DNA from: Oopsacas minuta | Taxonomy: Eukaryota > Animalia > Porifera | Direction of reading: 5' to 3' | DNA: 64,000 nucleotides | NCBI GenBank assembly: GCA_024704765.1 | Contig: JAKMXF010000266.1 | Span: 62,001-126,000 of the forward strand | Part shown: in pieces, positions 22,250-27,644 of the stretch | Layout of the letters: each line of letters begins with the position of its first letter | Numbering within the stretch: the first letter of the stretch is position 1 | Position numbers and translations under genes: made by a program | The notes under the pieces: generated by a model | What the model was told of the DNA's origin: nothing | Seen by the model: the letters and a program-made list of their open reading frames with translations, nothing else | Databases searched by the model: none

Positions 22250-23969
22250 ATGACAGACGACGCAGATCTAGATAGGTACATTAGAGCTGTTTAGTTGGCT
22301 CAGAATATATATTTATACTCTGTTCTGTAGGCAAATTGAAATACTTAGAAAGTGTGAGGTTATCAAAGAGAGTGAAGTTAAGACTTTATGCTCTAAAGCA
22401 AGGTAGTAACATATCTTAATTACAATTACCGATATTTATTAATTGTATTTATATAGAGAACTGTTGGTTGAAGAGAGCAATGTACAGAGGGTGGATTGTC
22501 CTGTAACAGTTAGTAATGTCATCATGTCTCTACTCTACTCTACTCTACTTCATTACTGTATTTGTAGATATGTGGAGATATTCATGGTCAATTCTATGAC
22601 TTAAGAGAGCTGTTTAAGGTAAGATAGTAAGCTATTCTAGGGCTCATTCTTTTGATGCAAATGACGTAGGTTGGAGGAGATGTCCCTGAGAATAATTATC
22701 TATTTCTCGGTGATTTTGTGGATAGAGGTTACTTCAGTGTAGAAACATTCTTACTGTTATTAGCTCTTAAAGTTAGACATCCAGACAGGATATTTCTAAT
22801 CAGAGGCAATCACGAGAGTAGACAGATTACACAGGTATTAACTAACTCATTGATATAATTAATTCTTATGTCACGTGTACTTCCTCTAGGTATATGGATT
22901 TTATGATGAGTGTAAGAAGAAGTTTGGCTCAGTTAACGTGTGGAGATATTGTACTGAGATATTTGATTTTCTAAGTTTATCAGCTATCATTGAGGATAAG
23001 ATATTCTGTGTACATGGAGGTCTCTCTCCTTCCATAAACACTCTAGACCAGGTTACTGATTAAATACGAATACATATCTCTTCCTAGCTATTAATCATAT
23101 TTATACCTAGATTCGATTGATTGACAGGAAGCAAGAAGTACCACATGATGGACCTATGTGTGATCTCTTATGGTCAGATCCTGAAGGTTACCATTACATT
23201 ATATCTCTTAGTCGTAATATCCACGAATTTGCTTTAAGGGAATTGATAATAGGAACAGCATTGTATATTATATATTTGGATTTACAGATATCGAGGGGTG
23301 GGGAATGAGTCCAAGGGGAGCAGGTTATCTATTCGGACAGGATGTAGTACAACAGGTATAATTCATAATTATTTGTATTCATATCCTATTTTGACAGACT
23401 GTCTTTAGTTTAATCTTATAAATAATGTCGAGATAATATGCCGAGCTCATCAGCTAGTGATGGAAGGATTCAAATGGCATTTCAGTAATACAGTATTGAC
23501 GGTATGGTCAGCTCCTAACTACTGCTATAGGTATTTACTATTGATAACTTTTGATGTTTGTTTGTGTGTAGTATACATATACTGTATAATATAGATGTGG
23601 TAATGTAGCTGCTATATTCATGCTGGATGAACTCCTAGAACATGAATTTAAGCTATTTGAAGCTGCACCTCAGGTTTGTATTATTATATACAGAAATACA
23701 ACTATATGTTCATTCAATTCTAACCATGGATGGTTGATTACGTTTATCTGCTTGGATGTTGTTCTAGTTATTTGAGGAAATTTTCGCTTGGTTGGAGGGA
23801 GATTTATAGATAACATAAAATGAACGAAATTCGCTATCCATGGTTAAATATCTAATAAGCATATATAGAACCATTTTTGACATAAGACACTTAATGTTAT
23901 TCTATATCTATATAGGAGGAGAGAGGAGGTCTCCCTGCCAAGAAGCCGATAGCAGAGTACTTTCTTTAA
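22250..23969 (+). CDS. PPP4C: Ser/Thr protein phosphatase 4 catalytic subunit, multi-exon, intact
   Basis: Joined exons give [60 protein letters not shown] and C-terminal EYFL*. Confidence 0.95.
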
Positions 23970-24160: not shown

Positions 24161-25837
24161 ATGTCAGTAGTATTTAGAAGATTTCACGTATTTACAACTA
24201 ATCTGAGAATATGTAAATGCCATCACTCTGGCTCCGTTCTTGTCCTTGGAGTACACAATCTATTCCAGAAGGATCAAGCATTAACTCCACTCTCTAAGCA
24301 AATTAATAAAGAGCTCAATGGACAGATTGTAGCAGGAATTGATAGGATGCGGATTGAGCATGACGTCACTCATGATAAATTCTCTCCTGCAGTAGTTTTG
24401 AGAGATATAAAGTTTGAATCTTTTTCTAAGATCCATATAGTCAACTTATTGCCCTACACTCCACCTCCTGATTCTATCTCACTCCCTCATAGTTCTCAGC
24501 TGTTGTCACTAAGCTATTGTCTGGAGCAGGGTGATTGGGGAGAATTTGAAAATTTTCGTTACAGTGAATGGGTTAGAAGACAATCTGCTTTAGCAGTACA
24601 TCACAATAGGAAGTATAACAGTATCCATATGGACCCTATGTGTGATCCTCAGAGTGTAGCGGAAGGTGCTACTCTAGCTTCTTTCAAGGTTAATTTGAAA
24701 TCCAAAAGTAATGCTAAAGATAACTTGCCGAATATCTCACAATTCAAACAAGGAAATGGTCACGTAGAGCTTTGGAATAAAGGTGTTTTAATCGCGGAAA
24801 TGCAGAATAACGCCCGTAGACTATCAGAACTCCCATCTAATCTTCTAGACCCCGCAGGATTCGTTAGCAATGCTCGATCACTTCTCTATCCAAACGATAC
24901 AGGTTGTCTTAACTATGACGTCAAAGACCCCAAATGGATAGAACATAACCTACCAGGAGTACACCATGTGGCCAAAGGGTCCAAAACAGAACCGCGGTTT
25001 TTAACAATATCATACGAGGGAGACAAAACTACAGAAGATACATATGTAATAATAGGTAAAGGTGTAGTATTTGATTCTGGTGGAATTAGCTTGAAGCCTC
25101 CAGCTAGTATGGAGTTAATGCGAGGAGATATGTCAGGAGCAGCTGTTGCTCTATCAGTATTCAGTGCTTGTGTTAAGCTTAAAGTCCCAATCAATCTCGT
25201 ATGTTTAATCCCATTAGTTGAGAACATGCCTTCCAGCACTGCTATTAAGCCTGGTGATATGATAACAATGCATAACGGTAATAATGTCATAGTCAATAAT
25301 ACAGATGCAGAAGGGAGATTAATACTAGCTGATACATTGAGTTATGCTAACAAGTATAATCCTAAACTAGTTGTGAATATCGCTACATTAACTGGAGCAT
25401 CTGATATAGCTCTGGGAGATTCATATTCAGCTCTATTCTCTAATTGTAATGCATTGAGTGATAAGCTATCTGTGTGCGGGGCTGCTACTGGGGAGTTCTT
25501 ATGGCCAATGCCTATACATTATGATTATCTAGCTGCCTTACGTAAATCCAATGCAGATCTAGATAATATATCAGCTGGCCGATCAGCTGGCTCTGGAGTA
25601 GGAGCTGCGTTTCTCTCTGAGTTTGTGAGTTACCCATGGGCGCATATTGATATAGGAGGTTCTATGATGCAGAAGAGTGAGTCTATTCCTTACCTTAGGC
25701 CTAAATTAATGAATGGACGTCCTACTCGTGCTCTGATCAACTTCTTCTCTAATCCTAAACTCAGTTCTTGTGAATACGTGCAAACTCCTAAACCTTACTC
25801 TCTTACAACAGATAAATACCAGCCTACTTCTGATTAG
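24161..25837 (+). CDS. LAP3: M17 leucine aminopeptidase, intronless, possible mitochondrial presequence
   Basis: GKGVVFDSGGISLKP, GDMSGAA, NTDAEGRLILAD: all metal ligands present. N-terminus is Arg-rich with no acidic residues. Confidence 0.9.
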   Translation: MSVVFRRFHVFTTNLRICKCHHSGSVLVLGVHNLFQKDQALTPLSKQINKELNGQIVAGIDRMRIEHDVTHDKFSPAVVLRDIKFESFSKIHIVNLLPYTPPPDSISLPHSSQLLSLSYCLEQGDWGEFENFRYSEWVRRQSALAVHHNRKYNSIHMDPMCDPQSVAEGATLASFKVNLKSKSNAKDNLPNISQFKQGNGHVELWNKGVLIAEMQNNARRLSELPSNLLDPAGFVSNARSLLYPNDTGCLNYDVKDPKWIEHNLPGVHHVAKGSKTEPRFLTISYEGDKTTEDTYVIIGKGVVFDSGGISLKPPASMELMRGDMSGAAVALSVFSACVKLKVPINLVCLIPLVENMPSSTAIKPGDMITMHNGNNVIVNNTDAEGRLILADTLSYANKYNPKLVVNIATLTGASDIALGDSYSALFSNCNALSDKLSVCGAATGEFLWPMPIHYDYLAALRKSNADLDNISAGRSAGSGVGAAFLSEFVSYPWAHIDIGGSMMQKSESIPYLRPKLMNGRPTRALINFFSNPKLSSCEYVQTPKPYSLTTDKYQPTSD

Positions 25838-26053: not shown

Positions 26054-27559
26054 ATGGCATCCTATTATACAGATATAGATAGGTGATAATATTACTTCAT
26101 AAACGGAATCTACATACTGGGACTTAACATACTTCTTTTGTTATAGGTATATAGAGACATTGGAGCAATGTAAACTCATCACCATTACAGAAGTAAAAGA
26201 TTTATGTTCTATGGCAAAGTAGGTTATGTTTGTTTCTTATTATTAATTTTACAGCTGTTTTACAGGAGAATACTCAGTGAGGAATCTAACGTGCTTGAGT
26301 TACAGTCTCCTTTAACAGTCAGTTTATTCTTATATTCTCCATGTTAATATTTCAAATATTATTACTTTAGATTTGTGGGAATTTGGAAGGCAATTTTCCA
26401 GCACTTCAAGAAATATTCAAGGTAATGTAATCATCTCTTCTCCCCACTCCTATATTATGTATATCTGTATTTCAGTTAGTTGGTCGTATACCAGACACGA
26501 ACTTTCTATTCCTTGGAGATCTGGTAGATCGTGGTTACTATAGCATTGAAACTATTCTCCTACTGTTTGCTTATAAAGTCAGATATCCTATTAGATTAAA
26601 CTTAATTCGAGGAAAACACGAGAGTAGAGCTATTACTCAGGTTTCTAATATCACTCCTACTCCGTTATCTCCAATTAAATCATACTTATCGTTACAATAG
26701 GTATACGGATTCTATGATGAATGTCTTAATAAATACAGGTCTACCGATGTATGGCGATATTGTACTGATGTATTTGACTACTTTCCTCTTTCTGCTACTA
26801 TAAATAATCAGGTTATAGTTCTTCGCATAATTTCTCAATATACATTTTGGGCATCTCTTATTATTTGGAGTTTAGACTTTCTGTGTACATGGTGGTTTAT
26901 CACGTTTGATATATACTCTAGATCAGGTATTCCTCCTTGTAAATATCATTATTATCATTATAAGTGAGTTGTATTAATAGTTAAGATTGATTATACGGGA
27001 TGTAGAAGTTCCGTGTGAAGGAGCCATGTGTGACCTTATATGGTCAGATCCTCAAGGTTTGGTTGATTTCATTTTCATAGAATTTCTTTTTCTGAGTTAT
27101 ATCCTTCTGCATAGAGCTAGATGGATGGGGAATCAGTCCAAGAGGTGCTGGCTGTCTGTACGGAGGAAATATCGTTAAAAATGTCTGTATTTCTAGCCAC
27201 TTATCATTTTATCATATTATGCACCAACCTCTCTAGTTTAACCATATAAATGGACTAGACATGATATGTCGTTCAAATCAACTAGAATTACAAGGTTATA
27301 GATGGTATTTCAAAGGAAAGCTATTGTCGATATGGTCTACACCAAATCACTGTTATAGGTACAGATTTTGAGTAGCAAATTTGGAAATATGTAATCATAA
27401 GTTTTTATACAGAATGGGTAATCCAGCTGCTATACTATCTCTTGATACTGACATGACATATAGCATTGCAGAGTTCTATGAACCTAAAGAGGTGATACTT
27501 TACCTTTAGGGTAAATTTCTATTTAATTATTCTTCATCCTTTAGGGTTGGAAAGTATGA
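26054..27559 (+). CDS. PP4/PP2A-family paralog with degenerate active site (candidate pseudophosphatase), multi-exon, absent from the ORF track
   Basis: Exons join in frame at positions homologous to PPP4C: [10 protein letters not shown]|YIETLEQC...|ICGNLEGNF...|...GDLVDRG...RGKHESR...|VYGFYDEC...|TFCVHGG|...MCDLIWSDP|...SPRGAG|...CRSNQ...WSTPNHCYR|MGNPAA...EPKE|GWKV*. No internal stops or frameshifts found. Confidence 0.88.
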
Positions 27560-27644
27560 TGTATTAACCTTTGTATATATATTTTGTTGTTATTTTTGTT
27601 TACTATATCTATACAAAGATATTATAAACTAGATATATTGCCCT

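Follow-up and report, generated by a model that had tools for sequence, protein, structure and literature searches.

The window analysed here is a stretch of 64,000 nucleotides (nt) from the glass sponge Oopsacas minuta (G000:C266:62001-126000), and the subject of this text is gene B, a divergent PP4C-like paralog on the plus strand in which most metal-binding positions of the phosphatase active site are replaced. The assembly holding the window comprises 61,460,524 bases in 365 contigs with ~35% G+C, and the published O. minuta genome is described as 365 scaffolds, ~61 Mb and 36% G+C (PMC10280926). A six-frame motif scan located a canonical PPP gene at ~22.5-23.5 kb on the plus strand, with the motifs GDIHG, GDFVDRG, GNHE, RAHQ and SAPNY, and a second plus-strand gene at ~26.5 kb with GDLVDRG and RGKHE. 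The former is referred to as gene A, the canonical PP4C, and the latter as gene B. An earlier sequence-only reading of this DNA had the canonical gene adjoining the paralog, but the two are separated by the M17 leucyl aminopeptidase gene, abbreviated LAP.

The twelve-exon model proposed in that reading, in frame and with canonical splice sites, holds. The coding sequence (CDS) of 891 nt remains in frame throughout and translates to 296 amino acids (aa) plus a stop, and all 11 introns are GT..AG, with lengths of 47-64 nt. Gene B and gene A are 54-55% identical (291 codons). Ten introns of gene B correspond to the ten introns of gene A in codon position and phase, with identical exon lengths, while the eleventh (26812-26875, 64 nt) divides what in gene A is exon 6, of 162 nt, into two exons of 111 and 51 nt. 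The features are listed below together with the evidence for each, where X4 is an RNA run and the orthologs are those in seven related assemblies, both described further on.

22250-23969, plus strand: gene A, canonical PP4C, 11 exons, 308 aa, C-terminus AEYFL and stop (model, spliced RNA contigs, orthologs).
24161-25837, plus strand: LAP, intronless M17 leucyl aminopeptidase between A and B, synteny anchor (open reading frame, ORF; Pfam Peptidase_M17, E=1.8e-101).
26054-27559, plus strand: gene B, divergent PP4C-like paralog, 12 exons, 296 aa (clean translation; orthologs in seven related assemblies).
26054-26082, plus strand: B exon 1, ATG, 29 nt (exon 1-2 junction in X4 contig 27; same length in six orthologs).
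26147-26218, plus strand: B exon 2, 72 nt (X4 junctions on both sides; length and phase equal to gene A exon 2).
26266-26317, plus strand: B exon 3, 52 nt (X4 junctions; length as in gene A).
26371-26421, plus strand: B exon 4, 51 nt, with CGNLEG for CGDIHG, then the EGNFPAL segment (model, X4 junctions, ortholog alignment).
26476-26640, plus strand: B exon 5, 165 nt, GDLVDRG kept, RGKHE with Asn to Lys (Pfam Metallophos, 28.8 bits; PP2A-C alignment).
26701-26811, plus strand: B exon 6, 111 nt (model, orthologs; upstream junction in X4).
26812-26875, plus strand: B intron 6, paralog-specific, 64 nt, retained in an RNA contig (X4 record 27; same position in six orthologs).
26876-26926, plus strand: B exon 7, 51 nt, CVHGG with the His kept (model, orthologs; downstream junction in X4).
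26981-27056, plus strand: B exon 8, 76 nt (X4 junctions on both sides).
27115-27182, plus strand: B exon 9, 68 nt, SPRG with the Arg kept (X4 junctions; Arg invariant across the B clade).
27237-27358, plus strand: B exon 10, 122 nt, CRSNQ (His to Asn) and STPNH (model, X4; RSNQ in 7/7 B sequences).
27413-27491, plus strand: B exon 11, 79 nt (upstream junction in X4; length equal to gene A exon 10).
27492-27544, plus strand: B intron 11, 53 nt, unspliced in an RNA contig (X4 record 28).
27545-27559, plus strand: B exon 12, terminal mini-exon, GWKV and stop (conserved AG + GGTTGGA... in L001 and L003-L007).

In PPP enzymes, metal 1 is coordinated by D57, H59 and D85 and metal 2 by D85, N117, H167 and H241, while H118 serves as general acid, with D88 as its partner, and R89 and R214 bind phosphate (PP2A numbering, used throughout). 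Gene A carries GDIHG, GDFVDRG, RGNHE, HGG, RAHQ and SAPNY. In gene B, the altered motifs GNLEG (N-L-E at 26380-26388), RGKHE (K at 26614), RSNQ (N at 27276) and STPNH (T..H at 27339-27350) lie exactly where the sequence-only reading had placed them, and the motifs it described as retained, GDxVDRG, HGG and SPRG, are present as GDLVDRG, VHGG and SPRG. The Pfam Metallophos profile matches exon 5 with 28.8 bits (cut-off 21.5) and exon 6 with 18.2 bits. Exon 5 also aligns with residues 73-125 of the solved PP2A-C structure (E=5e-19), where the GDLVDRG residues correspond to D85, D88 and R89, the Lys to N117 and the His to H118. According to the alignments with PP2A-C and with gene A, gene B has lost four of the six metal ligands, through D57N, H59E, N117K and H241N, as had been claimed, and D85 and H167 are kept. 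The accompanying claim that the substitutions concentrate on catalytic residues does not stand, the whole protein being 45% diverged. Set against an active PP2A/PP4/PP6-type enzyme, gene B has the Metallophos similarity and GDxVDRG but lacks GDxHG, the Asn of GNHE, the His of RxHQ and the YFL tail; set against the usual description of a pseudophosphatase, a phosphatase fold with substituted metal residues, it shows such substitutions at those four ligands.

As exon-level searches gave no B-like protein, the intronless LAP was taken as a synteny anchor for finding orthologs. A profile-free search with B exon 5 returned 0/150 best representatives with K or R at the GNHE Asn (the sponge's own genome lay outside its scope), and a word search with the same exon returned three canonical fragments only (full-length proteins lay outside its scope). 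The LAP homolog search identified seven relatives, with 66-73% identity, on long ENA contigs (loci L001-L007). TRAP-beta, PP4C, LAP, gene B and a TRPM2-like channel gene follow each other in the same order in O. minuta and in all seven, and tblastn detected an A-like gene in the gap between TRAP-beta and LAP and a B-like gene in the gap between LAP and the TRPM2-like gene in 7/7. Ortholog models were built using a splice-aware chaining script with AG/GT boundaries, no stops and +/-15 nt per exon. Complete B models were obtained in L001-L006, with exon lengths of exactly 29, 72, 52, 51, 165, 111, 51, 76, 68, 122 and 79 nt and no stops; in L007, runs of N interrupt the copy, which is partial and yielded no full model. 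The B clade alignments accordingly comprise seven sequences, O. minuta and L001-L006, in 292 columns.

The position of intron 6 is occupied in all six complete orthologs (54-62 nt), and the intron is absent from every A ortholog. In every species it contains in-frame stops or its length is not divisible by three, so the conserved exons downstream can be read only once it has been removed. The terminal mini-exon, encoding GW[KT][VLIM] and a stop (AG + GGTTGGA...), is found in O. minuta, L001 and L003-L007 at 50-131 nt past exon 11; L002, the most distant of the relatives, gave no such exon. Read-through tails past exon 11 are not conserved among the orthologs. The GWKV tail given by the sequence-only reading is thus supported by a mini-exon conserved in 6/7 relatives, although the RNA contig reads through intron 11.

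Alignment of the B clade shows how far the remodelled site is shared. GDxHG is represented by G[NST][LI]EG, with the Glu (E57 of B) invariant and N55 varying between N, S and T, and GDxVDRG by GDLVDRG in 7/7. GNHE has become RG[KR]HE, with Asn replaced by Lys or Arg in 7/7 and the His kept, and RxHQ has become an invariant RSNQ, with His replaced by Asn in 7/7. VHGG is invariant (His in 7/7), SPRG reads S[PH]RG with an invariant Arg, and SAPNY reads [ST][TN]PN[HF]; D85, D88, R89, H118, the His of HGG and R214 are all invariant across the clade. In total, 136 of the 292 columns (47%) are invariant in the B clade and 260 in the A clade, the A orthologs being nearly invariant. Among the ten active-site columns of the B clade, eight are invariant, one is K/R and one is N/S/T. 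With 8/10 of the site columns invariant against a background of 47%, the pocket is being maintained in a new state rather than drifting. Fixed differences between the A and B clades amount to 26 columns, including H to E, H to N and the block EGNFPAL in place of HGQFYDL.

Purifying selection on gene B is evident both among the orthologs and in comparison with a neutral simulation. The ratio of nonsynonymous to synonymous substitution rates (dN/dS) between B orthologs is 0.07-0.22 by NG86, compared with 0.01-0.04 between A orthologs, and 0.14-0.30 by maximum likelihood (ML) for pairs with dS of 0.25-0.64, compared with ~0.02-0.06 for A; values near 1, which the sequence-only reading had named in advance as refuting, were not seen. 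For two independent ortholog pairs, the corresponding ratio of proportions of differences (pN/pS) in gene B is 0.26 (L003-L006; Fisher p 2e-12, pN<pS) and 0.19 (L001-L005; Fisher p 2e-24, pN<pS), with 0.02 and 0.04, respectively, in gene A. In the simulation, the gene A CDS was evolved with intron base composition to the observed amino-acid identity in 300 runs. This produced a mean of 11 stops and a minimum of 4, compared with 0 in gene B, a mean BLOSUM62 score of replacements of -0.68 +/- 0.16 compared with +0.14 observed, and a third-position identity of 78% compared with 45% observed; the constraint signal is alike upstream and downstream of intron 6. The stop-free frame and the conservative replacements, relative to the simulation, argue that gene B has been under protein-level constraint for most of its history. 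Its terminal branch in O. minuta measures 0.11, while the other B sequences have 0.06-0.11 (L002 0.48), and as the branch is no longer than in the other B sequences, there is no sign that O. minuta is releasing the gene. A decaying pseudogene was considered and rejected given 0 stops across seven genomes, canonical splice sites, dN/dS of 0.07-0.30 and conserved synteny. Judged from these comparisons, gene B is most likely maintained and not decaying, as the sequence-only reading had supposed, with syntenic orthologs that have the same exons and altered ligands under purifying selection.

Four sequencing runs hold the gene B stretch. Three of them, X1-X3, behave as DNA, with unspliced contigs and even depth, and the fourth, X4, behaves as RNA, with spliced contigs. 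GT..AG joints are present in X4 at B introns 1, 2, 3, 4, 5, 7, 8, 9 and 10 (9/11), exactly at the modelled boundaries, and coverage inside introns 4, 5 and 10 is zero. The X4 contig with B exon 1 begins at 25818, within the last 20 nt of the LAP ORF (stop at 25835-25837), and so either the 5' untranslated region of gene B overlaps the 3' end of LAP or the two genes are co-transcribed.

Considered as a whole, gene B is probably an old linked duplicate of PP4C that has been kept as a protein-coding gene and whose product is non-catalytic, most likely acting by binding. By its sequence the phosphatase fold is preserved, and the residues of the two-metal centre were remodelled and have since been frozen. 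The second metal site would be abolished, with a Lys or Arg side chain probably filling that space; as Lys or Arg at position 117 is unable to ligate metal, a fixed positive charge would sit approximately at the metal 2 site. Normal PPP two-metal hydrolysis would be lost, and a basic, phosphate-shaped pocket could remain. We infer this loss of catalysis in the gene B protein from the changed ligands, and its phosphate binding and its partners likewise remain predictions. The protein may act as a holder of phospho-proteins, either a trap or a reader, and/or as a non-catalytic partner of, or competitor for, PP4/PP2A-type assembly factors; PP4R2, PP4R3 and TAP42/alpha4 genes are encoded in the sponge genome, at C309:172055-172738, C221:517064-518542 and C22:934222-935169, respectively, and represent potential partners. 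The YFL tail of gene A is replaced in gene B by a conserved EGW[KT] followed by a hydrophobic residue, and since the methylatable YFL tail is replaced, holoenzyme assembly and the set of partners should differ from those of PP4C.

Several observations weigh against this account, concerning the chemistry of the pocket, the splicing of the transcript, the descent of the gene and the breadth of its relatives. The pocket is above the protein average in conservation (8/10 versus 47% of columns), which fits a working site, and Glu, Asp and a polar residue could hold one metal, making weak or altered catalysis possible. Gene B may then still encode a phosphatase or another phosphoesterase whose active site has been remodelled, perhaps to hold a single metal, and which prefers other substrates or metals. 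Invariant residues include the general-acid His, D85, D88, the His of HGG and both phosphate-binding Arg residues, and the Glu and Asn that replace two of the ligands are able to ligate metals. However, the conserved Lys/Arg at the GNHE Asn is not, and N, S and T all occur at the first ligand position, an unusual degree of variation for a ligand that is essential. In addition, single mutations at ligand positions in PP1, lambda phosphatase and PP2A (e.g., PP2A H59Q and H118Q) lower activity by orders of magnitude, so that one such change is already crippling. We know of no active PPP with the residue combination of gene B, and a surviving enzyme appears unlikely.

The splicing data come from X4, one RNA run of one sample. 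Record 27 is unbroken over 26699-26926 and retains intron 6, record 28 is unbroken over 27411-27572 and retains intron 11, and no junction for intron 6 or 11 is among the 15 X4 joints listed for the window; of four further joints, three match the intron 7 variants of gene A. The isoform retaining intron 6 shifts frame and stops at 27016, giving a 210-aa product, and retention of intron 11 alone gives a tail ending in ...EPKEVILYL. The confirmation by RNA that the sequence-only reading had called for was therefore partial: transcripts exist and 9/11 junctions are spliced, and the dominant contigs retain introns 6 and 11, none of the X4 contigs directly showing a fully spliced mRNA. On this evidence, gene B of O. 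minuta could be on its way out, or persist mainly as a transcript that is regulated or unproductive, with most mRNA retaining intron 6, and the contigs of its 3' half break at each exon boundary, suggesting mixed splicing. Yet the O. minuta ORF is intact and its terminal branch is not longer than those of other B sequences, the constraint on the downstream exons equals that upstream, the splice sites are all canonical, and intron 6 lies at the same place in six relatives, where it must be removed. Minor variants are lost from Logan contigs, which follow the path of the majority, and joints are known only among those listed, so introns 6 and 11 may be spliced in a minority of transcripts. Since intron 6 and the mini-exon GW[KT][VLIM] are conserved in the relatives, the pattern is read as intron retention and not as gene death, and both outcomes in O. 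minuta, loss of the gene or its persistence mainly as such a transcript, are considered improbable. A product that functions as an N-terminal half alone, with residues 1-160 followed by a frameshifted tail, is less likely still: the intron-6-retaining isoform is the one assembled in X4, but exons 7-12 are strongly constrained at the protein level in all orthologs, the tail is not conservable, given an intron 6 of variable sequence and of 54-64 nt with in-frame stops in L001, L003, L004 and L005, and half a PPP beta-sandwich would be unlikely to fold. With the full-length protein as the product, its output may be low or regulated by splicing, as the two weak introns are largely retained in X4. 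An origin of the 64-nt intron 6 as a mobile-element insertion was also considered and rejected, its sequence being unique in the genome and the intron lying at the same place in six orthologs.

The protein tree also fails to place gene B where a duplicate of PP4C would be expected. An ML tree of the sponge PP1, two PP2A copies, a divergent PP2A-like ORF, five database proteins and the A and B sequences recovers the B clade with 100/100 and puts it outside PP2A+PP4, with weak support (81/76). In the approximately unbiased (AU) test, a sister-group relation between gene B and just the sponge gene A is marginally rejected (p-AU 0.03), and a grouping of B with the PP4 clade is not rejected (p-AU 0.245). 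Long branches affect the tree, and the identity of B is 49-55% to A and 47-52% to PP2A. Among 23 signature columns of B, 10 are PP4-like, 5 are PP2A-like and 8 are neither. Gene structure is more specific: a PP6-like multi-exon gene (L011, G000:C297:216000-221000) has intron positions unlike those of A and B, and the ten introns shared by A and B are therefore specific evidence of their common descent. One intron of this PP6-like gene sits five codons upstream of the position of the B-specific intron 6. Derivation from PP4, as asserted in the sequence-only reading, remains the best reading, with the ten shared intron positions and the linkage in its favour and a protein tree that neither shows nor rejects it. 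The taxonomic breadth of the seven relatives, finally, is inferred from divergence alone (LAP 66-73%; dS mostly >1.5); by the sequences compared, the duplication giving rise to A and B would date back at least to the common ancestor of the eight genomes.

Read as a binding protein derived from PP4C, gene B can be compared with several known systems. It resembles PPP4C (gene A) in its Metallophos fold signature, ten intron positions, chromosomal neighbourhood, GDxVDRG, HGG, SPRG and the His of GNHE, and it differs in the replacement of 4/6 ligands, the GW[KT][VLIM] tail, the extra intron, the EGNFPAL segment and an evolution that is ~5-10 times faster (dN/dS ~0.15 versus 0.02-0.05). VPS29 of the retromer offers a likeness as a calcineurin-like metallophosphoesterase fold that has lost its metal ligands and acts as a protein-binding scaffold; unlike gene B, it belongs to a distant branch of the superfamily outside PPP, is an ancient protein found throughout eukaryotes, and is without the PPP-type phosphate-binding arginines. 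To our knowledge and in the literature searched, no pseudophosphatase has been described in the PP2A/PP4/PP6 clade or among animal PPP genes, and a full-text literature search combining PPP4C and pseudophosphatase gave nothing relevant. PfPPP8 was called the first PPP-family pseudophosphatase in 2023 (PMC10317984). As with gene B, PfPPP8 and its apicomplexan relatives have a PPP domain with ligand substitutions and conservation across species, and a binding role was proposed over catalysis, with positively charged residues kept (PMC10317984). In contrast, the aspartates of GDxxDRG are mutated in PfPPP8 (GNLINRG; PMC10317984), whereas gene B keeps GDxxDRG and alters the other three motifs; the two also differ in having independent origins, in another PPP subfamily and kingdom. 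The kinetoplastid kPPP and second PP2B cluster are PPP pseudophosphatase candidates predicted from sequence alone and, like gene B, are PPP paralogs of particular lineages in which catalytic residues have been substituted, but they form protist-specific long-branch clades that are not PP4-like, and evidence from synteny, selection or expression such as that available for gene B is not reported in the paper (PMC2175518). STYX and EGG-4/5, where PMC10317984 cites them, are proposed to hold a phosphorylated partner without hydrolysis, as suggested here, and differ in their cysteine-based PTP fold, with unrelated structure and chemistry. Gene B is therefore filed, on its predicted features, as an independently evolved variant of the PPP-type pseudophosphatase kind. 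A broader proposal is quite possible, though we put it forward tentatively: gene B and its orthologs may constitute the first animal PP2A/PP4/PP6-type pseudophosphatase family, in glass sponges, in which a conserved Lys/Arg replaces the second metal, the protein reads or traps phospho-partners or titrates factors of PP4 assembly, and two conserved introns that are poorly spliced gate its output.

Other PPP genes of the sponge and its relatives show features of their own. An intronless 293-aa PP2A-like ORF at G000:C66:195204-196085 on the plus strand (L009:605-1486) has GDLFG, GNYIDRG, RSHK and SASNF, is without the YFL tail, and is a second PPP pseudophosphatase candidate in the sponge genome by its predicted protein. 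On G000:C318, two intronless PP2A genes lie in tandem (L008:737-1663 and L008:1922-2854); with GWGIGWGSGYTFG, the upstream copy is without the phosphate-binding Arg, and it ends in ...KYF and stop versus DYFL and stop. In gene A, intron 8 has been lost in L003 (3376-3565) and L006 (2920-3109), with exons 8 and 9 fused to 190 nt; the B copies of L003 and L006 keep all their introns, unlike their A copies. At intron 7 of gene A (23182-23289), X4 shows alternative joints from 23182, 23184, 23185 or 23186 to 23287-23289, some with 1-4 extra letters. Intron 10 of gene A contains a dispersed repeat of ~100 bp at 23763-23866, where the depth of DNA contigs rises from ~100 to 750-1150 and many contigs continue into unrelated sequence; this accounts for an intron length of 242 nt, compared with ~55 nt in its neighbours.

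Among pseudophosphatases, those of the tyrosine-phosphatase fold have been well studied and those of the PPP fold are barely known. Gene B corrects annotations that would count a second active PP4, and it represents a natural experiment on a core signalling enzyme: a PP4-sized protein with a fixed four-ligand change in which the phosphate-contacting residues are kept, held by selection over a divergence at which synonymous sites are saturated. The gene is a candidate for learning how Lys or Arg may stand in for a metal ion, and for the roles that a PPP subunit may have without catalysis, such as holding substrates or competing for PP4R2/R3, alpha4 or PTPA.

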